IMG/VR virus record: IMGVR_UViG_3300044712_002668
Coordinates: 186,001-250,000 of that record
Strand: one strand, 5' to 3'
DNA length: 64,000 nt
A program made the position numbers and the translations under genes. The notes beneath the pieces are model-generated. The model had not been told where the DNA came from. It made no database searches and was given only the letters and a program-made list of their open reading frames with translations. Shown here piece after piece: positions 935-27,867 of the stretch. Numbering within the stretch: position 1 is the stretch's first letter; every line of letters begins with the position of its first letter.

Positions 935-968
935 TAATTTGATATATAAGCGGAACGCGAGTTTAGAA

Positions 969-1037
969 TCACCATTAGTATAATGGCAGTACGGTACTCA
1001 TATGAGTACCAGTGCAGGTTCGAATCCTGTAGGTGAT
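969..1037 (+). pseudogene. degenerate tRNA-like gene (Met-CAT-like relic)
   Basis: D arm GTAT-AATGGCA-GTAC and T arm GCAGG-TTCGAAT-CCTGT are present; acceptor is one base short; anticodon arm is the palindrome GGTACTCATATGAGTACC with no 7-nt loop. Confidence 0.6.
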
Positions 1038-1076
1038 TTATACAAATTTCGTTCCGCTTATTTATTTAAGGGTTAA

Positions 1077-2615: not shown

Positions 2616-3124
2616 TGAAGAAGCCAAGTAATTTTATCCAAAAGGGATTGTTGAGATTTATAGAAGGTGATGCTACAAACCCTACTGGTAGTAGTATGCA
2701 ATATATTTTGCAGGTTTGTAATGATGATGGTTTATATGGGGCAGGATTTTCAGGGGCGCTATCTAAGAGATACCCTCAAGTTGAATCTGAATACAGAAAG
2801 TTTTGGAGAAACAAGTTTGGTAAACTAAAGCTTGGAGAGATTCAGGTTATACAAGTAAAGAGCGATGTTGCTGTTATCAATATGATCGCTCAAAAGGGTG
2901 TTGTTTCCAAAACAAATCCAATACCTTTAGATTTGAAAGCTCTCAAAGAATGTTTATCAAAGGCTGGTACAGAAATCAGCGATAACTCTGCGTCAGCTCA
3001 TATGCCAAGAATTGGCTGTGGTTTGGCTGGAGGTAAATGGGAAGATGTTCAACCGTTAATAGAAGAAGAGTTATTGAAACGCGGGGTAAATGTTACAGTA
3101 TATGATTTACCAGAGGAAAAATGA
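2612..3124 (+). CDS. macro domain protein (ADP-ribose / Appr-1''-p processing; Poa1p/DarG-like)
   Basis: [23 protein letters not shown] and [13 protein letters not shown] motifs. Confidence 0.88.
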
Positions 3125-3342
3125 ACTCTGAATATAAACCAATTCTTAAAAATGCTTTGGTTTCTCTATTTGTTTCTATGAACGATTTTGTCAAGGAACG
3201 GATAAGAATTACAAAAGAGGATCCTGAGGATTATATTATTTCTATTTATCCAGAATTTTCTGTATACAGAAAAGACAATAAAAAGGTTAGTAGAAAGGTT
3301 CTAAATAGTATCAAACGAGGGTTGGAAAATCGTAGTCAATAA
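3121..3342 (+). CDS. hypothetical protein
   Basis: 73-aa ORF overlapping the upstream stop. Confidence 0.55.
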   Translation: MNSEYKPILKNALVSLFVSMNDFVKERIRITKEDPEDYIISIYPEFSVYRKDNKKVSRKVLNSIKRGLENRSQ

Positions 3343-4628: not shown

Positions 4629-4810
4629 CGCTTGTTTTTCTTGAATAATTCCCAGCATTGAGGACATCTCCATTCTGGGAATTTTTCATTTCTTATTTTA
4701 CGTATAAACAAACGCCAACCCATTAAACTTAAAAAAGTAAAGTTCCCGTTTGTTTTAGGGGATAATAAACCACAGTCTTTACATTCGTATTGAAAGTTAT
4801 TATCATCCAT
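4625..4810 (-). CDS. small zinc-ribbon protein
   Basis: CKDC...CPQC; start placed at MDDNNF. Confidence 0.55.
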   Translation of the reverse strand: MDDNNFQYECKDCGLLSPKTNGNFTFLSLMGWRLFIRKIRNEKFPEWRCPQCWELFKKNKR

Positions 4811-4888
4811 GCGGAGAGCAGTGGTACCGCCCCACAATCCCATCAAGGATCCATTCGGTTTCCAACCGAAGCTAGCATCTCATCTAGT

Positions 4889-5374
4889 TTACTCTCCATT
4901 TAATATATATACCAAACTATCTAGTGGTAGTAAATTTTCTTTACTTGTTAAATAAAAATTATCCCAATACTTTCTTGTGTTATCAAATTTTCTTTCAACT
5001 TTCCATTTGTCTCTATTGCTTGTGTCTATCCATAGCATAGATCCTGTAATCCTCGATATCATTATATAAGCAAATGGGATTTCACTTCTTCCTGTAAATT
5101 TTTTTACAGTATCAATTATAATTGTATCGTAAGGGAATGTATTAGGGGATGTGAACCTTTCTTTTCTTGATTTTATTTCAATTCTTTTTGAATTTACTAT
5201 TAAGTCTTTTGTTTCAAAAAACTTATTAGCATCGCTTATATTTTCTCGAAACGCCATAGGAGGCATCTCAATACTGAAACCATGTAACTTGAAAAATGTT
5301 GCTGGCAATTCTTGCCACTGAAATCCATCAGTGAGTTCTTTTTTAAATAGCTCTGTATTTTCAGACCATTTCAT
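4889..5374 (-). CDS. putative PD-(D/E)xK nuclease-fold protein
   Basis: DLIVNSKRIEIKSR resembles the D-x(n)-EIK motif. Confidence 0.5.
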   Translation of the reverse strand: MKWSENTELFKKELTDGFQWQELPATFFKLHGFSIEMPPMAFRENISDANKFFETKDLIVNSKRIEIKSRKERFTSPNTFPYDTIIIDTVKKFTGRSEIPFAYIMISRITGSMLWIDTSNRDKWKVERKFDNTRKYWDNFYLTSKENLLPLDSLVYILNGE

Positions 5375-5376
5375 AA

Positions 5377-5832
5377 TTACTCCTTCATCCAATGAATAAC
5401 CATATCAGCTAATTCTTCTACAGATTCCGCAGGATATAAATTATGTTCCTTCCAGAATATCCAATCTAAATAATCGAAACTGTTTTTAGACTCTGGATTT
5501 CTTCCATAAAAGATACCATCTGTTTTGAGATAAGATCCGAATTGAACCATTGATTGAACATCTTCTGGTTTATCAAACCAGAAACAAACTACCTGGGATA
5601 GGAGCATATGAGTTCTATCCCATTCATAATATTTTTCAGAATGGTTTATAGTTAAGTATTTATTGGAAATGATAGTAGTTTTTATATATGATTTTACAAT
5701 TGCATTGTAAAATTTATCATGCCAATTATTTATGTTTTTGGAGGCTAGGAAAATGGTACCAAGACCACTTGTCATATTTTCTTGTGAGATAGAATCTGGG
5801 AAAAATATTCTATGTACTTTTTCTTGGTTCAT
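5377..5832 (-). CDS. nucleoside 2-deoxyribosyltransferase-like protein
   Basis: IFLAS..NW, EWD..H...VVCFWF pattern; the usual catalytic Glu appears as Gln (MVQFG). Confidence 0.5.
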   Translation of the reverse strand: MNQEKVHRIFFPDSISQENMTSGLGTIFLASKNINNWHDKFYNAIVKSYIKTTIISNKYLTINHSEKYYEWDRTHMLLSQVVCFWFDKPEDVQSMVQFGSYLKTDGIFYGRNPESKNSFDYLDWIFWKEHNLYPAESVEELADMVIHWMKE

Positions 5833-5835
5833 AAC

Positions 5836-5860
5836 AAAAAAGCCCACGCTATCGTGGGCT
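5836..5860 (-). terminator. rho-independent terminator
   Basis: AGCCCACG-ATAG-CGTGGGCT followed by TTTTT, downstream of tRNA-Ser. Confidence 0.8.
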
Positions 5861-5872
5861 CTCGACTATAAG

Positions 5873-5961
5873 CGGAGAATACAGGGGTCAAACCTGTAAG
5901 GCCATTACAGCTCGCCTCTTTAGCAAAGAGGTTCCGTCGTCAGCTTTCGGATTGATTCTCC
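5873..5961 (-). tRNA. tRNA-Ser(GCT)
   Basis: GGAGAAT/ATTCTCC acceptor, CCTCT-TTGCTAA-AGAGG anticodon arm, long variable arm. Confidence 0.9.
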
Positions 5962-5966
5962 AATTA

Positions 5967-6596
5967 TCAGATTTTTTTACGTGCTTGTTGTAAAAGGTAT
6001 ATGTGTCCTTCACTCTCACTTGCCTGTGACATAATCAAATCATCAAGCCCTAATGTAAGAGCCTCTTTTTCCTTTAATCTGTCATAGACTTTCTTTGCAA
6101 TAATTTGAAAAGAATGTTCTGCAGATATTGAAGATTCAATATGTTTTTCTGGAACGCCTTTATCTTCTACAATGAAGTGTTCGGCAAATTTCCCAACCAA
6201 ATCTTGGTGTACAAGCTCTCCACAAAGACCAACAACTCTTTCACCGGCATCATCAGCCATTCCTGTAGCATCTTCATATAATTGTTTGAATAATAAATGA
6301 AGACCATGATCTGTTGTTTCAAGATGATTCTGGTGGTGAACTAAATATAAAGCCCTAAGCATAGCAGCATATACTGAAAGTAATTCACAATCTTCTGCAT
6401 CAAGTTCTTTAGAAGGTTTTTGTTTACCTATAAAGCTATCAAGTATGTTTTCAGAAATAGCTGTTAATTGACTGTTGGTTGGTGTTCGTTTGGAATTTGA
6501 AACACGTTTTACAGCCCATTGTAAACGTTCCTCAGAATCATCTTTCAATGGTTTTGTGGACGCTGCATATTTGAATAGGGTATCAAAGCTTATCAT
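5967..6596 (-). CDS. Dps/ferritin-like domain protein
   Basis: LRALYLVHHQNH...HLLFKQLYE...DDAGER resembles Dps helices A/B. Confidence 0.65.
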   Translation of the reverse strand: MISFDTLFKYAASTKPLKDDSEERLQWAVKRVSNSKRTPTNSQLTAISENILDSFIGKQKPSKELDAEDCELLSVYAAMLRALYLVHHQNHLETTDHGLHLLFKQLYEDATGMADDAGERVVGLCGELVHQDLVGKFAEHFIVEDKGVPEKHIESSISAEHSFQIIAKKVYDRLKEKEALTLGLDDLIMSQASESEGHIYLLQQARKKI

Positions 6597-6620
6597 ATAG
6601 TTAAGTCAGAATAATACCAG

Positions 6621-6695
6621 AGTCCCGCAGGAGAATCAAACTCCGTTAACAGAAACGGTTTTGCAGACCGTCAGATGCATCAGCACAACGGGACC
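6621..6695 (-). tRNA. tRNA-Cys(GCA)
   Basis: ACGGT-CTGCAAA-ACCGT anticodon arm; GTCCCG/CGGGAC acceptor pairing. Confidence 0.8.
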
Positions 6696-6770
6696 TGGAG
6701 CGGATAGTGGGACTCAAACCCACAACGTTCTCGTTGGCAACGAGGAATTCTATCATTGAATTATATCCGC
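6696..6770 (-). tRNA. tRNA-Gly(GCC)
   Basis: GCGGATA/TATCCGC acceptor, TTGCCAA loop, encoded CCA. Confidence 0.92.
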
Positions 6771-6907
6771 AAATGCTGAGGTAGAATATGAGCAATCTTT
6801 CGGCCTTCATGACCTTCTAGTCCCATATCCCCTTACCCAGTCTGGCGACCTCAACTGTGTCTGTACAAACACACCAATGCATTGATTGGGGGAATCAACT
6901 TATTGGG

Positions 6908-6978
6908 AGCGGGCACCCAGGATCGAACTGGGATAGCTAGCTTGGAAGGCTAGAGCATAACCACTCTGCCATACCCGC
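6908..6978 (-). tRNA. tRNA-Gly(TCC)
   Basis: GCGGGTA/TGCCCGC acceptor, CTAGC-CTTCCAA-GCTAG. Confidence 0.92.
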
Positions 6979-6988
6979 ATATACATTA

Positions 6989-7873
6989 TTATATCACAGT
7001 ATTCATATTTTGTTGAAGGTAACCTATATAATATTCAAATGATTCATTAGGTTTCAATTCTCCATCTTCAATTTTCTTTTGAAGAACGTTTCTCAACTCA
7101 CCGATTTTTGGTCCTAATGGAATATTCAGGCTATCTGAAATAGCATTTCCCAATCCCTTTGGGAGATAGGTTGTTTTTTCATCCTCTTGTCTTATTTTTA
7201 TAATTCTCTTTTTAAGATTATCAATACCTCTTAAAATTTTATTTCTTTTACTATCATTACCTGTAGTAATATCAGCTTTAGATAGCTCAAGGATATCATC
7301 CAGGTAAGGACCCATTTCCTTGTCAAATCTTCTTACAGCATTATCTGACCATGAGTCATCATACCCCTCAGTGTACCCAAGATTGTTTATCAAAAACTTG
7401 ATGTGTTCTTTTGTTCCGGGTGAGAAGATATTGTATTTTTTCGCAAACTTCTCAAAGATTTTGGAGCTGTGGTGTTCGTGGTGATGAAACGTTACTTTAC
7501 CATTTTTCCATTCAAAAGTATACGCTTTTCCAAGATCATGAAAAAGCGCAGCCCACCTTAAAGGTACTACTGGTAATGTTTGGTTTACTACCCTTATGGT
7601 ATGCGGCCAAATATCTTTAAATACATTCTTTTCTGTACTGATTTTTTTAGTCTTCTTTAAATTATCAGCATCTTCTATTTCTGGAATAGTGATTGCAAAA
7701 AATCCACATTCCTTTAAAAGATGAAGGGCGATACCTACGTGTGTACCAAGTAATATTTTGTGAAGAAGTGATAAATCTGTGTCTGGTGATAATTCCTTTA
7801 TGTTTGGAATTATACTATTTACAGTTCCATGATTGGCAACTTCTAAAATTTGTATCAATATGTTACTAGACAT
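6989..7873 (-). CDS. HD-domain protein related to the body/tail of CCA-adding enzyme, lacking the nucleotidyltransferase head
   Basis: DIWPHTIRVV, AALFHDLGK, HHHEHHS, LSKADIT; no GG..RD.LL/DxD head motif at the N-terminus. Confidence 0.8.
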   Translation of the reverse strand: MSSNILIQILEVANHGTVNSIIPNIKELSPDTDLSLLHKILLGTHVGIALHLLKECGFFAITIPEIEDADNLKKTKKISTEKNVFKDIWPHTIRVVNQTLPVVPLRWAALFHDLGKAYTFEWKNGKVTFHHHEHHSSKIFEKFAKKYNIFSPGTKEHIKFLINNLGYTEGYDDSWSDNAVRRFDKEMGPYLDDILELSKADITTGNDSKRNKILRGIDNLKKRIIKIRQEDEKTTYLPKGLGNAISDSLNIPLGPKIGELRNVLQKKIEDGELKPNESFEYYIGYLQQNMNTVI

Positions 7874-7876
7874 ATA

Positions 7877-8152
7877 CTAGTTTTTTTTATTTGTTGGTTT
7901 ACTAGTTTTCTTTGTTTTCTTCTCATTTCCTGATAAATACGCATCAGAAAAGCTTTTTATTTTCTCACCCATTTCAGGAGTAATTGGTCCTCCCCAAACG
8001 TTGTTTACCGTAAGTGTGTAATTACCTTTATTATTGTGTAAAAACATCCATATCTGCTTGAAGTTTTGCAGTATGGCTTTTCTGAGACCATTCATTTTTA
8101 ACAGGTCTCTATTTTCGGCAACTTTGAATTCGTTTTTGTCTATACCTACCAT
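7877..8152 (-). CDS. hypothetical protein
   Basis: ORF coupled to its neighbours. Confidence 0.55.
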   Translation of the reverse strand: MVGIDKNEFKVAENRDLLKMNGLRKAILQNFKQIWMFLHNNKGNYTLTVNNVWGGPITPEMGEKIKSFSDAYLSGNEKKTKKTSKPTNKKN

Positions 8153-8865
8153 TAACTCACCTTATTTGGAATATATGATATTTTATCTTTACCACAGGTT
8201 GTTTCAAACAAAGCTTGAATCCATCTCTCTGCGGTAACATAATCTTCAATTATATCCAAACAACTCTCGACTTTTTCTAAATCGAATGTGATTTCATTTG
8301 AGTCCCTGAAGTTATCCAAACTCAACCAAACTTTATCATGTTCTTTATATTCTATAGCTTTAAGAAAATCATACACATCATTGCTATCAACTATGTAACC
8401 ATAATTATTATTGATTGTGCTATACTCTTTAGATAAAGGAAATAATGGTAATTTCTTTTTCTCTGCTAGAACCATGTAATCATTCTTGTCATCTGAATCT
8501 ACTATTATTTTTTTTCTAGTCAGGTTTAGTATATCCAGTATTTTTGGGGATGGTGGGGTATCTAATTGGATACGATGTAGGACGGCCCAGAGGGCAGGGT
8601 GTTCCAGTCGTAACGAAAGGTCTCCACGCTCTATGATATCTCGTCTCCACCTGCCGTGCAAGTGCCCGCAAACACGTAGCTTATCGCTATTGTTGATCAG
8701 GGTGTCAAGCCAGTCACTTGATGGATATGCCGTTTCGCGTTGCGTCAAGGATTTTAGATTTATGTTCCATTCTATAAAAGGATATTTTACAGATAGGTCA
8801 ACTATATCCTCTATATTAACGCTATCATCGATTCCATTAATGGATACTGTACAAACCATAAACAT
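8152..8865 (-). CDS. phage TIM-barrel-like hypothetical protein
   Basis: TVSINGIDD, YPFIEW, YPS..W and HLHG motifs recall a common phage family; function unknown. Confidence 0.45.
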   Translation of the reverse strand: MFMVCTVSINGIDDSVNIEDIVDLSVKYPFIEWNINLKSLTQRETAYPSSDWLDTLINNSDKLRVCGHLHGRWRRDIIERGDLSLRLEHPALWAVLHRIQLDTPPSPKILDILNLTRKKIIVDSDDKNDYMVLAEKKKLPLFPLSKEYSTINNNYGYIVDSNDVYDFLKAIEYKEHDKVWLSLDNFRDSNEITFDLEKVESCLDIIEDYVTAERWIQALFETTCGKDKISYIPNKVS

Positions 8866-8906
8866 CTCAGATGTTATTCATTATCTGGATGCATGTAAAT
8901 TAGTAG

Positions 8907-8981
8907 TGGTGCTGATTTGGGGATTTGAACCCCACTATTCCTACATACCAAGCAGGATGAATTCCCAAGATTCTAATCAGC
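8907..8981 (-). tRNA. tRNA-Thr(GGT)
   Basis: GCTGATT/AATCAGC acceptor, CCTGC-TTGGTAT-GTAGG, encoded CCA. Confidence 0.88.
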
Positions 8982-8985
8982 GTTT

Positions 8986-9189
8986 TTATATGTCTAAAAT
9001 ATTTTCGGCTATTCTAAGCCAAACATGTTTGTCGTATGCTTCATCAAAACTACCAGCATCAAATGGTTCCAACATTGATGGTGTTTTATCATTATCTTCG
9101 TCTATATGAGCGTCTCTTACTCCACGCATATAAAATTCACGAAGCTTCTCTGCAAACGCGGTTATTATAGCTTGTTTTACGGTTCTCAT
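8986..9189 (-). CDS. hypothetical protein
   Basis: 67-aa ORF with GAGGAG RBS. Confidence 0.6.
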   Translation of the reverse strand: MRTVKQAIITAFAEKLREFYMRGVRDAHIDEDNDKTPSMLEPFDAGSFDEAYDKHVWLRIAENILDI

Positions 9190-9370
9190 TTTGACTCCTC
9201 ACTTCATGTGGGGAGATGCTAGTGAACCTTACTAAGTATCAAAGCAGCTCCGATCTGCCTATTTTAATAATGAATTATTGATATAATAGTGGAGCCTACC
9301 GGATGTAATGCGTTTTGTATTATTATATTAGTATGTAGGTAAGCGCTTTTGCGCAAATCGAGGAGGCTAC

Positions 9371-9862
9371 ATGCTTAGAAACTGTTTGTTTTGTGATGTA
9401 GAATTTAATGCTAATGAAAAAGAGGTTAGAAGAGGTAATGGAAAGTTTTGCACTCTTAGTTGTTCTAGCAAGTTTTATAGCAGGGAAAGATCTTTGAAGA
9501 AGATTCCAAATGTAGAATGTGCTCTATGCAAAAAAAAGTTTTATAAATCAAAATCAGATTTTGCTTTATCTAAAAGTGGTCTATTTTTCTGTTGCAGAAA
9601 ACATAAAGATCAAGCTCAAAGAATTGGTGGTATTCGTGCCATTATGCCAGATCACTATGGTACCAGTTTGAAAAAATACAGACAGTTAGCTTTATCTGTA
9701 AAAGACACAAAATGTGAACGATGTGGATATGAACAAAATCCAGCGGCAATAGTTATTCATCATATTGATAAAAATAGAGATAACAATTCTATCGATAATC
9801 TTGAAGTTTTATGTTCTAATTGTCATGCTATAGAGCATTGGGATAGAGCTTGTGGAGAATAG
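9371..9862 (+). CDS. HNH homing endonuclease with N-terminal Cys-rich zinc-binding repeats
   Basis: CERC...IHHIDKNRDNNSIDNLEVLCSNCHAIEH; GAGGAGG RBS; opposite orientation to flanking tRNAs. Confidence 0.9.
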   Translation: MLRNCLFCDVEFNANEKEVRRGNGKFCTLSCSSKFYSRERSLKKIPNVECALCKKKFYKSKSDFALSKSGLFFCCRKHKDQAQRIGGIRAIMPDHYGTSLKKYRQLALSVKDTKCERCGYEQNPAAIVIHHIDKNRDNNSIDNLEVLCSNCHAIEHWDRACGE

Positions 9863-9924
9863 GGGTAACGCTCCCCTTTATCTGCATTGCAAATGCAGCG
9901 TAATACCTTGTATACTAATTCCCC
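9853..9924 (-). tRNA. tRNA-Ala(TGC)
   Basis: GGGGAAT/ATTCTCC (G3:U70), CTGCA-TTTGCAA-TGCAG; atypical T loop AGCGTTA. Confidence 0.88.
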
Positions 9925-9925
9925 G

Positions 9926-9998
9926 TCGAGCCGGGTGGAATTGAACCACCTACGTCCAAGTTATCAGCCTGGCATTCTAACCGGTGAATTACGGCTCG
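9926..9998 (-). tRNA. tRNA-Ile(GAT)
   Basis: CGAGCCG/CGGCTCG acceptor, CCAGG-CTGATAA-CTTGG. Confidence 0.88.
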
Positions 9999-10015
9999 GG
10001 TGTATTGACTATGCT

Positions 10016-10044
10016 AACATATTGGTATATATCAGCATAGTCAA
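10016..10044 (-). promoter_or_regulatory. sigma70-like promoter for tRNA-Ile/Ala
   Basis: TTGACT-N17-TATGTT, inside an 11-bp inverted repeat. Confidence 0.55.
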
Positions 10045-10048
10045 GGTT

Positions 10049-11284
10049 TTATTTTAATAATTCTTTTAGCCTGTCTTTTTTCAATGACAAAAGGTGATCA
10101 ATCAATTTTTCATTATCTAAACGGTCTTTTACTATGTCACGTGCAATTGTTCTCTTTTTTGCCGTCTTGGCATTCTTTGCAAAATCCAAAGCTGTATCCA
10201 ATTCACATTTTGCAATTGCTATTTTGTATACAGATGGGGATTTGTCTTTCAAAAAGACACCTATTTTATTTACCGGATATTTTGCAACAACTCTTTTTCT
10301 GATTTCTACAGATTTTGAGTTTATAAATAAATCAAGTTTTTCTTCTGGGATGAAATCAATAATATCAAAAACGCCCCAATAGTTAGAAGATATATCATCT
10401 TTCAGATAAACTACCAACTCATCTGCCAATGATGAAATGGTTTCTTTAGAAAGTTTTGATAGTATATCTTTTTTATTATATTGAGATATAATAATCCTTA
10501 ATAATTCTTGTGGTGTTTTATCAATACACGCCACATCCATTCTTATCTTGCTTACCCAATTCTTAGTTACATCTGATTCATCTTTGATCATTTCAACAAT
10601 TTCATTTGCTGAAAACTCACCAGAAGCTATTCTTAACAGATAATTTTTGGGCGCTTTATCAGCTACAATTGCTTGTACTGGAATGTGTAGAATCTCTATT
10701 TCTTTATCTGAAAATTCACGAGCATATGAGTCTTTTTCATCATACACATCAAACTTAAAAAGACCCTGGCGTAATATTGCGTACTTTGTTGATTTTAGAA
10801 TTGGCTTCTTTGTTATCAGAATATAAAAATTGTTTCCACGTGAAACGTAATCTTCATAATAATGACTATCTTTCATGGTTGTACACCATCTGGTGTTTGA
10901 ACCATAGATTATCATAGAGTTTTTATTATCAACTCTGATAACCTTTACATTCTCATCTTCAAATATTAATTTTGAACCTTCTTCTTTAATCTCTTTTTGT
11001 TTTTGCCTATGAGAAGGTTCTAATTCTTTTATAATATTTTCTAAATCTTTTAGATCTTTATATTGATTTATATCTTTCTTTTCAAATCTACTATTGTGTT
11101 CATGAAAGAAAGATACTGTAGCACTTATATCTTCTGGAGAATGTTTTTTGGCTAGCTGTTTAGCGATCCATAGTAAGTATTTATTTTTACCATTACTTGG
11201 ATCCTGTATAGTCAGAGCTGTGTCAATTTGATCTGGGTATTTTTTTGAAACAGTATCTATTCTTGACATATATGAAACTTTCAC
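10049..11284 (-). CDS. hypothetical phage protein (G.NTRWC motif; paralog of 37775..39067)
   Basis: KYLLWIAK, KKDINQY and IYGSNTRWCTT are shared with the 37775 ORF. Confidence 0.65.
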   Translation of the reverse strand: MKVSYMSRIDTVSKKYPDQIDTALTIQDPSNGKNKYLLWIAKQLAKKHSPEDISATVSFFHEHNSRFEKKDINQYKDLKDLENIIKELEPSHRQKQKEIKEEGSKLIFEDENVKVIRVDNKNSMIIYGSNTRWCTTMKDSHYYEDYVSRGNNFYILITKKPILKSTKYAILRQGLFKFDVYDEKDSYAREFSDKEIEILHIPVQAIVADKAPKNYLLRIASGEFSANEIVEMIKDESDVTKNWVSKIRMDVACIDKTPQELLRIIISQYNKKDILSKLSKETISSLADELVVYLKDDISSNYWGVFDIIDFIPEEKLDLFINSKSVEIRKRVVAKYPVNKIGVFLKDKSPSVYKIAIAKCELDTALDFAKNAKTAKKRTIARDIVKDRLDNEKLIDHLLSLKKDRLKELLK

Positions 11285-11628
11285 CTATGAGCGGTAGTTC
11301 TTACCGGGTTATACATCATAAGTTTGGTTATGGAGAACTTGAAGTTATCGAAGTCCTCGACAGGAGAAATTGCCTTTACATTATAGGTATTAATACAAAC
11401 CTCATATGTAATAGCCATAGCTTTTGATCCGTTTTGCGCATCCTCTTCTACAGCAATGCATTGAAGAATAAGCAAATCATCATCGTATGATGTTATCTGT
11501 CCACGCATGAATGTAAGCTTTGTTTTTTCTTCTTCTGCGTAAAATCTATTTCCTTTATTGTCCCCAAAATAAATATCTACCCATTGTCCAAGATATTTGG
11601 CTCCAACAACCTGTGCGAAATTTGACAT
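11281..11628 (-). CDS. hypothetical protein
   Basis: 115-aa ORF with AGGAG RBS. Confidence 0.6.
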   Translation of the reverse strand: MSNFAQVVGAKYLGQWVDIYFGDNKGNRFYAEEEKTKLTFMRGQITSYDDDLLILQCIAVEEDAQNGSKAMAITYEVCINTYNVKAISPVEDFDNFKFSITKLMMYNPVRTTAHR

Positions 11629-11655
11629 ATTATCTCCTGATGATACAATATCTAG

Positions 11656-11958
11656 CTATTCACATACTCTTGTGTGGTAGCTATTTTTTTTATATATCAT
11701 TTTTTGAACTGCATCTGGCATGATACCAGAGTGTTGCTCCATTATCGCATCATCACGCCAATATACCGAGACAAATATAAGTCCAGGTTCATTTAAAAAA
11801 TGATTATTTTTAGCCCACTCTGTGACAAATTTATTATCAAGTTTTGCAATTTCGATTGGTACTTTCAATGATGTTATGTACCATCCCCCACCCTCTTCAC
11901 ATACTATAAAATCTATTTTGCCATAACTACACATACATACATATGAAAATATTACCAC
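11656..11958 (-). CDS. hypothetical protein
   Basis: 100-aa ORF in operon. Confidence 0.5.
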   Translation of the reverse strand: MVIFSYVCMCSYGKIDFIVCEEGGGWYITSLKVPIEIAKLDNKFVTEWAKNNHFLNEPGLIFVSVYWRDDAIMEQHSGIMPDAVQKMIYKKNSYHTRVCE

Positions 11959-12293
11959 TCTATTTTTATGTATGGAGTTCCAAAAAACCAGATATTTCCA
12001 TCAGTTTGATGTTCTTCTGTAGAGCGTTCATTAATTCTTTTTTGAAAAGAACACTCATATCCATATGAATTTAATTCTTTTTTCAATTCTCCGTATACTA
12101 TCTGTGTTTCTTCTAATGTTTTATATTGTAGTAATTCGTGTCTATAACATGAATTTCCACTCAAAGCTTCTTTGTATATCTTATAAGCTATTATATTGAG
12201 AATATTATGTATAGCATATTGGAGTGGACTTTCAGATGATTTTCTATTTTTTGATTCATTAGTTATGTCACGAATTAATCCAGTACTAAGCAT
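11952..12293 (-). CDS. hypothetical protein
   Basis: 113-aa ORF, GAGG RBS. Confidence 0.55.
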   Translation of the reverse strand: MLSTGLIRDITNESKNRKSSESPLQYAIHNILNIIAYKIYKEALSGNSCYRHELLQYKTLEETQIVYGELKKELNSYGYECSFQKRINERSTEEHQTDGNIWFFGTPYIKIEW

Positions 12294-12308
12294 AATATCC
12301 TCATTTAG

Positions 12309-12345
12309 TATCCCAAGTAGGATTTGAACCTACAACCTCAGCTTT
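12309..12345 (-). pseudogene. 3' half (positions 37-73) of a split tRNA-Arg-like gene
   Basis: AA-AGCTG-AGGTT-GTAGG-TTCAAAT-CCTAC-TTGGGAT-A pairs with the 5' half at 12961-12995. Confidence 0.85.
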
Positions 12346-12356
12346 GATTTTGGTTG

Positions 12357-12430
12357 TACGCCTAGTAGGGCTCGAACCTACAACCATTGCGTTAGGACCG
12401 CAATACTCTATCCAATTGAGCTATAGGCGT
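12357..12430 (-). tRNA. tRNA-Arg(CCT)
   Basis: ACGCCTA/TAGGCGT acceptor, TTGCG-GTCCTAA-CGCAA, A20. Confidence 0.88.
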
Positions 12431-12431
12431 A

Positions 12432-12941
12432 TTATATTTGATCTAGTTTTATTAAACCATGATCTAATTCCCAATGACAGTTTCTACAAAGCGGAATTTG
12501 ATTTGATGGATCATTTACCGTTTCCAATAATGTGTTGTCAGGATATTCGTGTAATGGTATTTTATGTGCTAATTCAACATGAATAGAATATCCGCATTTT
12601 TTACATGGCATCTTTGTCATGTTTTTATTCCAGTAACGGTTCAAAGACCTGATCTCGTGATGTAACCAAGATGTATGCCTTCCTTTCTTTTTCTCTTTTT
12701 CTCTAAGTTCTCCGATTGTTTTTTGTTTTGTTGAATATTTTTCACGGCACGTTGCACATGTTTTTGCCCTAACAAAAAGTTCTTTACCACAATGTGTACA
12801 AAAACCTCTTGACTTTTTTAATCTTTTCGGAAACAGTTTGTTATTGTATCGTGCTGCGCAAGATTTTGAACAAAAAACAGGGTTATTTGTTGTTGTATCG
12901 CACTGTTTACACTTTATCAATATCTCATCTGATAATGCCAT
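12432..12941 (-). CDS. HNH homing endonuclease
   Basis: FCSKSCAA zinc repeat; CKKC...ELAHKIP...NQIPLCRNCHWELD. Confidence 0.88.
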   Translation of the reverse strand: MALSDEILIKCKQCDTTTNNPVFCSKSCAARYNNKLFPKRLKKSRGFCTHCGKELFVRAKTCATCREKYSTKQKTIGELREKEKKKGRHTSWLHHEIRSLNRYWNKNMTKMPCKKCGYSIHVELAHKIPLHEYPDNTLLETVNDPSNQIPLCRNCHWELDHGLIKLDQI

Positions 12942-12960
12942 TGCTAGGTCTCTGTTTGTG

Positions 12961-12995
12961 GGAAAGCTGCACTCTATCCGTTGAGTTATTGGGAC
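12961..12995 (-). pseudogene. 5' half (positions 1-35) of a split tRNA-Arg-like gene
   Basis: GTCCCAA-TA-ACTC-AACGGATA-GAGT-G-CAGCT-TT-CC. Confidence 0.85.
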
Positions 12996-13023
12996 ATGAT
13001 TCCCTTTCTATTACCGTTTGTGG

Positions 13024-13155
13024 TCAAGCAGCAATAGAAAGGGAATCATTTTTCCAAGCGTTGTTTCTTGGACGATCTTTTCTTCCTTTTCCTTTTTCAG
13101 GTTTTACCGTTCTATCCCTCAGCCTTGAAGGATCATTCTCCTGAAAGTAGGTCAT
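13024..13155 (-). CDS. ArfA-like small basic protein (not in the supplied ORF track)
   Basis: MTYFQENDPSRLRDRTVKPEKGKGRKDRPRNNAWKNDSLSIAA resembles the ArfA core FRQRVEKNKKGKGSY.RK. Confidence 0.5.
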   Translation of the reverse strand: MTYFQENDPSRLRDRTVKPEKGKGRKDRPRNNAWKNDSLSIAA

Positions 13156-13162
13156 GATTTTG

Positions 13163-13381
13163 TTACGTTTTTTTGTCATTGTTCTTTTCCTCCATATCTA
13201 AAACTTCCCAGTAAGCCTCATCAGTATCCCAATATTTACATTCTTTTACGGTATCAAATAAAGCCGCTTTCTTAATTGTTTTTCCTTCTGGATGTACCCA
13301 TCCATGATACTCATACCTCCAACCATAATGCACAAGCATTGATACTTTATATGCATCCATAAACCCCATTACATTTATCAT
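13163..13381 (-). CDS. hypothetical protein
   Basis: 72-aa ORF overlapping the AAA stop. Confidence 0.55.
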   Translation of the reverse strand: MINVMGFMDAYKVSMLVHYGWRYEYHGWVHPEGKTIKKAALFDTVKECKYWDTDEAYWEVLDMEEKNNDKKT

Positions 13382-14709
13382 ACATACTCCTTATCATTAA
13401 AGGACATTGTTGCTTCATATTTTTCTTTTAAGTTTTCAATTTGTTTCAATTGATCAAAATATTCCTTAGCCGTTATTCTCATAAGTCTAATACACAGGTC
13501 CTTTAAATCAGCACCTGTTAATTCATCTGATCTTTCTATACACAAATTGAAATCTTCATCTGATAATGTAATATTGAATTTCTTTAAGTATTCTTTTAAT
13601 ATTATAGTTCTATCTTCTTTGTTTGGTGGTGGAATTTCGATTATCTGATCTATCCTACCTTTTCTTATTATAGCATCATCTTTCAAGATTCCATTGAAAG
13701 TGTTAGCTGTGAATAATAAGGTTGTTTGTGGACAGATTTCTTTTATTTCTTCAAGCATTACAAGAGTATCTCGAATAATTGTACTTGAAGATAAACCTCT
13801 ATCACAATCTTCAAAAACAATAAAGTCAGGGTTCAATAAAGAAAAGGTTGTTTTAAGGTTGTCTATTGATGAGTTTGAAAAACCTGAAACCAAACAAGAT
13901 TTTCCACCAATCTTTTTAATAAACTCTCTTATGATTGATGTTTTACCAGTTCCCGGTTTACCGATTAATAAATATGTTCGCGATATATTATTGTTTTTAT
14001 AAAACAAATGATTATCACATAGGGTATTAACGATTTCTAATGAAGATCCAAACAGGTCTTTGTCATTTAGTTTTGTTTGGGGACATTTAATACCAGTTTC
14101 AGAATCTTCCTCTTCAACATATGAAGAAGGATGGGAAAACTCTAAAGATATTGAGTTATTCCATTTTGACCATAAGAAATTTACTAAGTATTCTTGTGTA
14201 ATATTGTTACTTATTGCAATGAACCTTGAGTTACCTTCAAAGGTTTTGCTTTCATATAAAAAACCGTCCCCAATAGGATAGCTTGTAATAGATCCGATAG
14301 CACTCCATCTTCTACGATCTGATTTATAGACCTCGCAAGGTTCTATTCCCAAATCAGATATAAGTGACATAATGATATTGCTAGCACCTTTTAATTCCAA
14401 AGGATTTGAATGTGGAAGAGCTTTATCAATCTGTTTTAATGGGGAGGCCACAGAACTCCAGATAGAATACATATATGCCGACATCCTGAACAGTTTAACA
14501 GGAGCAGAATCTTCTGAAGTTGGTAATTGATGAACGTGTTCTGATAAAGCATCAACAAGTGATAATAAAGGTAATACTGCGTTTTGATGTCTGAATATAG
14601 AATATTTATTGAATATTTTTGATAAAGAAAAACCAATAAGATCTTTGTTATTATCTGTTTTTTGCATTGAATATCTTCTTAGTTTTTTGTAAAATTTTCT
14701 GAAAGACAC
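13378..14709 (-). CDS. AAA+ ATPase (BCS1-like)
   Basis: Walker A GKPGTGKT, Walker B FEDCD, SRH TAN...DDAIIRKGRIDQIIE. Confidence 0.9.
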   Translation of the reverse strand: MSFRKFYKKLRRYSMQKTDNNKDLIGFSLSKIFNKYSIFRHQNAVLPLLSLVDALSEHVHQLPTSEDSAPVKLFRMSAYMYSIWSSVASPLKQIDKALPHSNPLELKGASNIIMSLISDLGIEPCEVYKSDRRRWSAIGSITSYPIGDGFLYESKTFEGNSRFIAISNNITQEYLVNFLWSKWNNSISLEFSHPSSYVEEEDSETGIKCPQTKLNDKDLFGSSLEIVNTLCDNHLFYKNNNISRTYLLIGKPGTGKTSIIREFIKKIGGKSCLVSGFSNSSIDNLKTTFSLLNPDFIVFEDCDRGLSSSTIIRDTLVMLEEIKEICPQTTLLFTANTFNGILKDDAIIRKGRIDQIIEIPPPNKEDRTIILKEYLKKFNITLSDEDFNLCIERSDELTGADLKDLCIRLMRITAKEYFDQLKQIENLKEKYEATMSFNDKEYV

Positions 14710-16774: not shown

Positions 16775-18055
16775 CTATTCGTCATCCCAGATGCTATCCG
16801 TCTTGTCCTCTGCCATCGCCCCCATCGACTCCAATTTTACCTCTATCTCAAAAAATGTTGATAACCACTTCTTAAAACTAAGAAATGTTGATGTAACATT
16901 TTCTGTTTTATGTGGTCCTAGTAAAAATTCAGTTATTTCTGGTGTTCCAAAAACTTTCCATAATCCATTATCTGATAAAAATTTCTTTGGAACAACATAA
17001 TCTGAATATGTAAAATTACAAGATAATTTATCTATATGAGTAAACCCTAAAGAAAAATCAGGATCTATTTTACTATTATCTTTAATTATGTTAGAAGCTC
17101 TAAGGGCGTAAAACATAAGCTGTAGATCAAAGTAACCAGTTCTAAGTTTACCCTGCCAAGTACCAGTTACATTATGATCGTCAGAATAAATATGATCTAG
17201 TTTATCTGACTCTGTAGGAAAAGGCCCAGGTCCATGTCTTGTGGGATAAACCCTCAACAAGCCTAATTTCTTAATAGGATCATCATAGTTAGCTTCTTCT
17301 AACAAGGAATAAACGTTATTGAATGTGGTATCAGTCCAAGTATTATATGGAGTGAAACCTACATTCTCATCAAGAAGAACTCCTTGAGCACCTTCAAATA
17401 GAATATTTTCTTGCTGATGTTCAAATACATGTCTTAGATATGCCGAATCAGTTATGTGTAATCCTGACTCAATAAACTGCTGACATCTTTCAATAAAATA
17501 ATCTATCTCTTCTTCAGTACAGCAAATGTCAAAATTGTTTTTTACAATTTCATTTTGAATTCTTACTTTATTGAGTAGAATATTTTTAGTTTGTAAATCT
17601 TTTACTCTTAAAGAGAGATCTGGATAATCTATATTATACTTTACAGTTTCACCGATACCCATACCACAAGAACCATGGCGTTGATTACCACGATCTTGTT
17701 CTCTTTTTTTATTCAGTAGAATATGTACTGGAGTTGTTACTAAAGCTTCCCTATCTACAGATAAACGAAATAGAGGATTGTAAGGTAGGTCTGTTGCTTC
17801 ATTGAGAAGCGCCCCAGGATTTACAATCATATATTTTGACAAGTGTGTAAATACACTAGGCAAAAATGAACCAGCACCAAATTGTGCAAAGGTATGGTGT
17901 TGATCTTTAGTAACTACATTATGAGCGGCTTGTGCGCCGCCATTATATCTTATAACATGTTTTATGTCATATTTTCTGCACAAATAATCTGTAACAGAGC
18001 CTTTGCCCTCATCACCGAAACCAAGCCCGGCAACAGCAATTACTTTTCTGTTCAT
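16775..18055 (-). CDS. purA: adenylosuccinate synthetase
   Basis: GLGFGDEGKG P-loop, RYNGGAQAAH, EGAQG, TRHGPGPFP. Confidence 0.9.
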   Translation of the reverse strand: MNRKVIAVAGLGFGDEGKGSVTDYLCRKYDIKHVIRYNGGAQAAHNVVTKDQHHTFAQFGAGSFLPSVFTHLSKYMIVNPGALLNEATDLPYNPLFRLSVDREALVTTPVHILLNKKREQDRGNQRHGSCGMGIGETVKYNIDYPDLSLRVKDLQTKNILLNKVRIQNEIVKNNFDICCTEEEIDYFIERCQQFIESGLHITDSAYLRHVFEHQQENILFEGAQGVLLDENVGFTPYNTWTDTTFNNVYSLLEEANYDDPIKKLGLLRVYPTRHGPGPFPTESDKLDHIYSDDHNVTGTWQGKLRTGYFDLQLMFYALRASNIIKDNSKIDPDFSLGFTHIDKLSCNFTYSDYVVPKKFLSDNGLWKVFGTPEITEFLLGPHKTENVTSTFLSFKKWLSTFFEIEVKLESMGAMAEDKTDSIWDDE

Positions 18056-18130: not shown

Positions 18131-18136
18131 AATGAG

Positions 18137-18206
18137 TCGGCTTGTCAGGATTTCCACCTGAATCGCCCTGTACAATCAGGGGCTTTGAGAATTAAGCTAC
18201 AAGCCG
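18137..18206 (-). pseudogene. tRNA-Pro-like gene with aberrant 6-nt anticodon loop
   Basis: CGGCTTG/CAAGCCG-A73 (Pro identity); anticodon arm CCCTG-ATTGTA-CAGGG. Confidence 0.6.
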
Positions 18207-20502: not shown

Positions 20503-21321
20503 TTATTCCTTGAATTCTTTTGGCAAGATATCTACAAAACGTTTTAGATCAAAGTTCTTTGGATCTGAAACCTGACCATCACCTATTTCAATGATACGGA
20601 ATTTTCCGTCAGTTCTTCTCGCTATATCAACAGAGAAAAAACCGTTTGCAAAACCAATTTTATGTACACATTCTGTAAGTATCTCTGGTATGGTATACGG
20701 ATTTGTAGCATGTTTGGGAGAGAATTTCTCCGTATTTGAATATGCTATACCTTTTACTACAAAGAATCTTTGTTCAGAGTTTGTAAGATAATCTTCACCA
20801 TGTCTTACACATACCCCACCCTCAATGCATCCTCGATATTTTTTGATTGCTAAAACAACTTCTTGAATATCATCTTTGGATTTTACCAAAGAACCCGGTG
20901 ACATTGAGTTGGATTTTACAAAATCTTTTATAAAGTAACTAGGCCACTTTAAATTGGCCAAAGCTTCTTTGAAGTTTGCGTTTTCATCTAGTATGATGGT
21001 TTCAGCAGTAAGATGTGCAATCTTCGGATACCAGAATGGTAGGTGATGACAGAATCTATATGACTCTGTAGTAGTAAAAAGCTTGGCTCCGTATTTCTTT
21101 ATTTCATATTCAAGAATTTGATACTCATCGATATTGAGCATCCAGCCACGATATAGCACAGTATCGCCAGCTTTGATCGCTGGCTTGATAGAGATCTGTT
21201 GTCCGATAGTTATAACAGAGGCTTCGTAGCCGTTAGACTGTATAGTATCGAACTCTTCTCGCCAAACACAATCTGGCAAAAAGTCTTTTACTGGATCTGC
21301 TGGATAGAGTATTCGTAACAT
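20503..21321 (-). CDS. ATP-grasp domain protein (R2K-like)
   Basis: FIKDFVKS, EQRFFVV, FFSVDIA, IIEIGDGQVSD. Confidence 0.8.
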   Translation of the reverse strand: MLRILYPADPVKDFLPDCVWREEFDTIQSNGYEASVITIGQQISIKPAIKAGDTVLYRGWMLNIDEYQILEYEIKKYGAKLFTTTESYRFCHHLPFWYPKIAHLTAETIILDENANFKEALANLKWPSYFIKDFVKSNSMSPGSLVKSKDDIQEVVLAIKKYRGCIEGGVCVRHGEDYLTNSEQRFFVVKGIAYSNTEKFSPKHATNPYTIPEILTECVHKIGFANGFFSVDIARRTDGKFRIIEIGDGQVSDPKNFDLKRFVDILPKEFKE

Positions 21322-27429: not shown

Positions 27430-27502
27430 TCTCCCAGGAAGGATTTAAACCTCCGGCCTAAACGTTCGTAGCGTTCCGCTCTATTCGCTGAGCTACTGGG
27501 AG
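27430..27502 (-). tRNA. tRNA-Arg(ACG)
   Basis: CTCCCAG/CTGGGAG, GAACG-CTACGAA-CGTTT. Confidence 0.88.
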
Positions 27503-27867
27503 AATTTATATAAATCTCTATCATTGCCTTTTTTACAAAGTACAAACCCTAACTTTGTATGTGACTTTATCGATGCAATATTATCATGTTTTATAATTGC
27601 GTATAAATGATCCAACTTTTCTGTTTTTATCAGCTCATCATACATTATATTTGAATATCCTTTACCTCTATATTCTGGTTTTATTTCAATATGAGAGCAC
27701 TTTTTACCATCGTATTCAAACACACCAACTTCACCTATTTGTTTATCATTACTGTAAACTGAATATAAATGACCTGGCAGATTATATATAGTATTGCCAA
27801 CAAGTTTTAATTGGGTTTTAATTGACGCTTGTTTGTAATAAATGTTTATATAATCATCAAGATACAT
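27493..27867 (-). CDS. GNAT-family acetyltransferase
   Basis: IEIKPEYRGKGYS acetyl-CoA motif, NIASIKSHTKLGF. Confidence 0.85.
   Translation of the reverse strand: MYLDDYINIYYKQASIKTQLKLVGNTIYNLPGHLYSVYSNDKQIGEVGVFEYDGKKCSHIEIKPEYRGKGYSNIMYDELIKTEKLDHLYAIIKHDNIASIKSHTKLGFVLCKKGNDRDLYKFSQ

Follow-up and report, generated by a model that had tools for sequence, protein, structure and literature searches.

An HNH gene and an intact tRNA-Arg gene lie between the two halves of a tRNA-Arg gene in a huge phage

Homing endonuclease genes are thought to survive inside important genes only when sheltered by a self-splicing intron or an intein, or else by staying between genes. In the tRNA region of phage T4, the free-standing GIY-YIG endonuclease SegB lies between genes, recognizes tRNA-gene sequence (the T-psi-C motif), and drives co-inheritance of itself and the surrounding tRNA genes, with loss of the recipient's markers (PMC2330249). 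In collaborative (trans) homing and the endonuclease-invasion route to mobile introns (F-CphI/psbA and mobE/I-TevIII), a free-standing endonuclease targets an intron-insertion site, and the interrupted allele is immune (PMC3984707, section 12; PMC6083498; PMC2790892). Endonuclease genes, sometimes with their own control elements, also sit directly inside conserved genes and break them in two, with function rescued at the protein level by split inteins or subunit assembly (PMC2677866). Bacterial group I introns occupy the anticodon loops of tRNA-Leu(UAA), tRNA-fMet, tRNA-Arg(CCU), and tRNA-Ile (reviewed in PMC3984707), at positions 34/35 or 36/37. Here, we report a tRNA-Arg gene of a huge phage that is interrupted at its anticodon by an HNH gene and a second, intact tRNA-Arg gene.

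The sequence analyzed (the window) is a 64-kb stretch of IMG/VR virus record IMGVR_UViG_3300044712_002668 (positions 186,001 to 250,000). A prior sequence-only reading had proposed that a tRNA was split here by an HNH gene plus a replacement tRNA, and its coordinates and sequences were confirmed. The features of the locus, all on the minus strand, are as follows.

12994 to 13051 (−), a long perfect hairpin (about 21 bp) abutting the 5′ end of A; context, not shown to belong to the cassette.
12961 to 12995 (−), 5′ half of the split tRNA-Arg(CCU) gene, called A (positions 1 to 35: acceptor 5′ strand, D arm, anticodon-stem 5′ strand, loop TTCC).
12942 to 12960 (−), left junction and 19-nt leader of the HNH gene (CACAAACAGAGACCTAGCA), whose first base, C, occupies the place of U36.
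12432 to 12941 (−), HNH endonuclease gene (169 aa), with two N-terminal zinc ribbons and a C-terminal HNH domain, on the same strand as the tRNAs.
12357 to 12430 (−), intact inner tRNA-Arg(CCT), called B, the presumed functional substitute; its anticodon stem (TTGCG/CGCAA) differs from that of A at all 5 pairs.
12346 to 12356 (−), right junction, an 11-nt A/C-rich spacer (CAACCAAAATC) between B and the 3′ half.
12309 to 12345 (−), 3′ half of A (positions 37 to 73: AA, anticodon-stem 3′ strand, variable region, T arm, acceptor 3′ strand, A73).

Joined in silico, the two halves of A gave an ARAGORN cloverleaf with a 7-bp acceptor stem (GTCCCAA/TTGGGAT, G1.U72), a 4-bp D stem, a 5-bp anticodon stem (CAGCT/AGCTG), and a 5-bp T stem. 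Only nucleotide 36 was missing, so that the anticodon reads CC?, and adding any base gave a 73-nt tRNA. ARAGORN with introns allowed up to 1,500 nt did not report the split gene, so we wrote a scanner requiring a T arm followed by 7 nt, a fully complementary 5′ acceptor strand with U8, a D stem, and a matching anticodon stem up to 3 kb away. The scanner found exactly this one case on both strands of the window and none in 40 shuffles, and with the same rules it recovered 13 ordinary tRNAs. As the sequence-only reading had noted, a C lies on both sides of the gap (12960 and 12346).

The window holds 34 ARAGORN tRNA calls, 33 of them on the minus strand and many with similar arms, which raised the possibility of a misjoin within a repetitive tRNA array. 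This is extremely unlikely, because the source sample holds the whole 4.4-kb stretch in one contig, and contigs from an independent rhizosphere sample (X2) cross both junctions with no differences (11977 to 12427 and 12927 to 13525). No contig joined the two halves without the insert, although this is weak evidence, since contigs drop rare variants.

The 615 nt between the halves (12346 to 12960) hold only one intact open reading frame and B, with 19, 1, and 11 nt (31 nt in total) lying outside them. The encoded protein matched Pfam HNH_2 (PF13391; 27.6 bits against a cutoff of 21; E value, 2.7e-6; residues 114 to 164) and carried all 21 residues that are invariant across 33 homologs, including H121, N143/N147, H156, and C113/C116/C152. 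An AlphaFold model was confident (pLDDT, 94.4), and its best PDB matches were HNH nucleases, namely the Gme nicking endonuclease 4h9d (probability, 0.98), Cap5, and PacI, although all E values were at least 0.03 and only the C-terminal domain aligned. Searching PDB by sequence gave only weak McrA and TagI HNH hits, and PHROGs had no family for the HNH or its neighbors. The nearest homolog was 54% identical. B was called Arg(cct) by ARAGORN and scored 63 bits over positions 1 to 71 of the Rfam tRNA model (E value, 5e-13).

A junction-spanning pattern identified one IMG/VR contig (L011, extended as L013, and seen again in a second sample as L012) from a relative phage, collinear with positions 5375 to 12430 of the window at roughly 50 to 60% protein identity. 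At the matching place, this relative has a single uninterrupted tRNA-Arg(CCT), called R, and no HNH. The anticodon arm of R (GCAGCTTTCCTAAAGCTGA) is identical to that of A apart from the missing T36; the parent of the split gene was therefore tRNA-Arg(CCU); the sequence-only reading had inferred an Arg parent from A20 and A73. A differs from R at four acceptor pairs, all of them compensated, which shows that A evolved as a working tRNA before it was broken. The same 19-nt arm, together with the unusual G1.U72, is the chromosomal tRNA-Arg(CCU) of many Planctomycetota MAGs (about 24 of 34 hits), which hints at the host. Upstream of the tRNA, synteny with the relative breaks down, which fits the known tendency of nuclease genes to mark exchange boundaries (PMC10448857).

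We also considered whether B is the resident gene and the A halves are foreign or duplicated material, for example, a partial duplication later separated by HNH insertion. B shares 5 of 7 acceptor pairs and its whole T arm with R, whereas A differs from R at the four acceptor pairs and at three T-loop bases. However, the two A pieces are exactly complementary halves of one tRNA, with no overlap and a gap of only one base, a pattern that indicates insertion and not duplication. Overall, A is closer to R than B is (96% over 28 nt for the 5′ half and 90% over 29 nt for the 3′ half, against 82.5% for B), and the nested geometry would need two extra rearrangements, so we regard this reading as very unlikely.

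No group I intron (RF00028) was detected by Rfam in positions 12000 to 13300, even at an E value of ≤10, although the same model detected group I introns of about 200 nt and about 700 nt around homologous HNH genes. The 5′ side reads ...TTCC|C, with no U before the junction and no P1-like pairing, and the insert ends in ...AAAATC, its last base being C or U and not the terminal G of a group I intron. A junction mini-construct folded as a cloverleaf with the junction-proximal insert unpaired, without the 3-nt bulge, 4-bp helix, 3-nt bulge arrangement of an archaeal-type BHB intron or split tRNA. Removal of the 615 nt at the RNA level by an unknown route, such as processing of B by RNase P/Z followed by ligation or a ribozyme overlapping the open reading frame, would leave A able to yield a working tRNA. 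All four stems of A are still perfect, which fits either a recent event or selection; excision at either flanking C would give a 7-nt loop (TTCCCAA); and several HNH-only inserts of about 520 to 620 nt elsewhere also keep perfect outer stems. Against this, excision would give the anticodon CCC in an Arg-type body and not the CCU of the parent, and outer halves decay in related nested loci (below). We therefore consider RNA-level removal very unlikely, although without RNA data it cannot be formally excluded.

To place the HNH in its family, 160 further loci with homologs were fetched (one of them, L099, being the window's own contig), giving, with the loci fetched earlier, 169 loci with 142 distinct HNH sequences. 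Loci are denoted by L numbers; the census rests on simple pattern rules, and only the loci named here were inspected by eye. Out of 110 tRNAs within 150 nt of the HNH open reading frame, 47 were tRNA-Arg, against 34 of 459 farther away (counted over all 169 loci, without removing duplicates). Four arrangements occurred. In the first, the HNH is free-standing and abuts an intact tRNA-Arg, usually antisense; L014, the sister of the window protein, is of this kind and lies beside a tRNA-Arg(CCT). [quoted passage not shown] In the third, it lies antisense inside a group I intron of about 700 nt in tRNA-Arg (L030, L047, L073, L079, L084, L088, and L153, and, judged by sequence likeness, L173 and L114). 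In the fourth, it lies directly in the anticodon loop with no room for a ribozyme, as in the window, L027 (sense, HNH only), L089/L094 (antisense, HNH only), and the nested loci described below. The family thus displays most stages of the proposed route from a free-standing endonuclease to a mobile intron at one kind of site, which makes the endonuclease-invasion model testable on a compact system. On the HNH tree, these arrangements interleave: L144 (nested) is sister to L173 (in an intron), and L153 (in an intron) is sister to the L085/L149/L082 group.

The nested layout recurred in at least four other metagenomic phage loci (L085, L149, L144, and L127), each with the order outer 5′ half, short spacer, intact tRNA-Arg(TCT), antisense HNH, spacer, and outer 3′ half, the outer halves folding as a cloverleaf when joined. 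L085 and L149 share a single 683-nt block at 85% identity, which starts inside the outer 5′ half and ends just past the outer 3′ half, while their flanks are unrelated. Their outer tRNAs differ by compensated changes in all four stems; the same cassette therefore sits in different tRNA genes. In each nested case, the inner and outer anticodon stems differ. In L155 the outer 5′ half is truncated and the T stem is imperfect, in L082 only the 3′ half remains, L058 keeps an imperfect leftover 3′ half, and L019 and L142 show a 3′ half with no clear 5′ partner. The outer gene is thus not maintained over time, which argues that it is dead rather than spliced. Orphan 3′ halves were counted next to 73 of 142 HNH genes, but this is an upper bound, as Rfam shows that some are odd complete tRNAs missed by ARAGORN. 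The order and orientation in the window (sense HNH, then tRNA) are unique among the 142 distinct HNH sequences, at least 30 others having the HNH antisense inside a tRNA gene; the window case is therefore an independent origin and not a member of the L085-type lineage.

The explanation that we consider fairly likely, and which supports the sequence-only reading, is that a resident tRNA-Arg(CCU) gene was invaded in its anticodon loop by a 615-bp cassette holding a homing-type HNH endonuclease gene followed by a second complete tRNA-Arg(CCU) gene, leaving A dead and B decoding AGG in its place. We infer that in a mixed infection the HNH cuts or nicks uninterrupted A-type or R-type alleles in or near the anticodon arm (GCAGCTTTCCTAAAGCTGA), that the break is repaired from the cassette-bearing genome with the two tRNA halves and neighboring genes as homology, and that the HNH and B are copied in together. 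The carrier would be immune because its A site is interrupted and because B has a different anticodon stem, and the recipient would lose one tRNA gene and gain another in the same step, so the insertion would cost little without any intron. Cleavage specificity, the resistance of B, the lack of splicing, and present-day mobility are inferred. The sequence-only reading's description of the target as an essential RNA gene is overstated, since phage tRNA genes are usually dispensable, and HNH-only insertions without a substitute tRNA exist (L027, L089).

Those HNH-only insertions show that a substitute tRNA is not obligatory, so B may be a hitchhiker rather than a selected partner. A break in A, made by this HNH or by something else, could have captured a stray fragment that happened to hold the HNH gene and its neighboring tRNA, in which case the pair is not a coadapted unit and may no longer move. 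Both junctions lack homology, which needs an illegitimate insertion step that we cannot reconstruct, and U36 was lost as in untidy end joining; the family usually lies beside a tRNA-Arg anyway, so that a neighboring tRNA would often be cocaptured; and the gene order in the window is unique. No free HNH-B donor and no intact allele with the acceptor stem of A were found, as patterns for the B anticodon arm and the A 3′ half matched only the window's contig, and our searches found no second copy of the window's own cassette. On the other hand, nested tRNA-in-tRNA layouts recur in several HNH lineages, each with differing inner and outer anticodon stems, and the cassette shared by L085 and L149 in unrelated contexts behaves as expected of a unit that moves. 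A one-off accident is hard to separate from the main explanation but is, in our view, unlikely.

In comparison with SegB, an HNH gene here lies inside a tRNA gene, at the anticodon loop, and the putatively cotransferred tRNA is nested with it inside the target. In comparison with collaborative homing, the role that the ribozyme plays in keeping the host gene's function would be taken by a second copy of the gene. In comparison with fractured protein genes, an RNA gene split in its anticodon loop cannot be rescued at the protein level, and rescue would be by a spare gene carried in the insert. The insertion site is shared with bacterial group I introns, but the window insert has no ribozyme core. 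Full-text searches found no paper combining split tRNA, phage, and homing. The locus and its recurrences point to a third solution for an RNA gene, in which the target is broken and a spare copy that the enzyme presumably cannot cut is supplied. It is possible, though tentative, that the window represents a general, undescribed class of mobile element in phage tRNA arrays (a replacement homing cassette), in which an endonuclease gene travels with an immune copy of its own target tRNA and gene replacement does the job that self-splicing does for mobile introns. More speculatively, because the presumed target arm is identical to that of the chromosomal tRNA-Arg(CCU) of Planctomycetota, the enzyme might also hit the host gene and leave the infected cell dependent on the phage's copy.

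tRNA finders miss such split genes and intron-bearing phage tRNAs, so phage tRNA inventories are distorted. A blastn search of 50,697 phage records for close relatives returned only a stray 65-nt tRNA-like match, and the neighboring AAA ATPase found only the window's own contig in IMG/VR. No second copy of this HNH was found in the window, and no other homing endonuclease was found among ten open reading frames of the tRNA region. The hairpin abutting the 5′ end of A (−35.4 kcal/mol; z score, −8.6), which also appeared as spurious miRNA-like Rfam hits, is absent upstream of R in the relative.

A perfect hairpin of about 21 bp (window 12994-13051, minus strand; -35.4 kcal/mol, z -8.6) ended exactly at the first base of the split tRNA, overlapping the end of a 51-aa open reading frame. 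The hairpin was absent upstream of the intact tRNA in the relative and could be a terminator, a processing site, or part of the rearrangement. Synteny with the relative phage (window 12996-19200 compared with 4656-9916 of its contig, L013) was good downstream of the tRNA-Arg locus and broke exactly at it; upstream, about 6 kb (AAA ATPase, several tRNAs) was replaced by unrelated genes. At the other end of the insert, the A/C-rich right junction of the window cassette (CAACCAAAATC; window 12346-12358) resembled the right end of the L085-type cassettes (CAACAAAATA; L085, about 1096-1111, with L149 and L082), nested cassettes found at other phage loci, although the sequence is short and of low complexity, and the resemblance may be due to chance.

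The anticodon arm of the split tRNA and of the relative's tRNA was identical to that of the chromosomal tRNA-Arg(CCU) of many Planctomycetota metagenome-assembled genomes (genome contig hits L179-L212), which also share G1.U72, hinting that the host of these huge phages is a planctomycete.

Among the other loci carrying homologs of the HNH gene, tRNA genes were split in the anticodon loop by an HNH gene alone, as follows:
L027, 267-851 (plus strand), tRNA gene with an HNH-only insert of 514 nt.
L089, 2085-1434 (minus strand; the same as L094), tRNA gene with an HNH-only insert of 581 nt.
Neither had a ribozyme signal or a substitute tRNA, yet the outer stems were perfect. These are either freshly killed tRNAs or cases of an unknown way of removal; possible further cases were indicated at five more loci (L116, L152, L065, L086, and L168). 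Elsewhere, phage tRNA-Arg genes carried group I introns (L005, 3435-3708; L141, 2189-2468; L177, 2191-2466; and L030, L047, L084, and others) at two positions, 34/35 in Arg(TCT) and 36/37 in Arg(CCT) and Arg(TCT), with many of these introns holding the HNH gene on the antisense strand. None of these tRNAs was reported by ARAGORN. In L141 (2145-2181) and L177 (2147-2183), an abiF RNA motif lay directly upstream of the intron-bearing tRNA-Arg, and in L141 a permuted tmRNA (3006-3255) lay just downstream of the HNH gene.

Atypical tRNAs or tRNA-like sequences were also found next to HNH homologs. In L143/L145 (2337-2455, plus strand), a tRNA (Rfam, 53 bits) carried an insert of about 45 nt in the anticodon loop, immediately upstream of an HNH homolog; the insert is too short for a group I intron. 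In L002 (2898-2979, minus strand) and L004 (3496-3574, minus strand), odd tRNA-like sequences (31 bits) abutted HNH homologs, with a CTTCTAA loop and a normal T arm and acceptor stem but no recognizable D arm. Within the window, two ARAGORN calls of undetermined type ("tRNA-???"; 967-1039, plus strand, and 18136-18206, minus strand) had 6-nt anticodon loops (2-nt anticodons) and look like weak or degenerate tRNA-like sequences. Genes interspersed in the tRNA array of the window (16775-18055, 20503-21321, 27493-27867, and 6989-7873, all minus strand) encoded adenylosuccinate synthetase (E value, 8e-56), an R2K-type ATP-grasp protein, a GNAT acetyltransferase, and an HD-domain protein.
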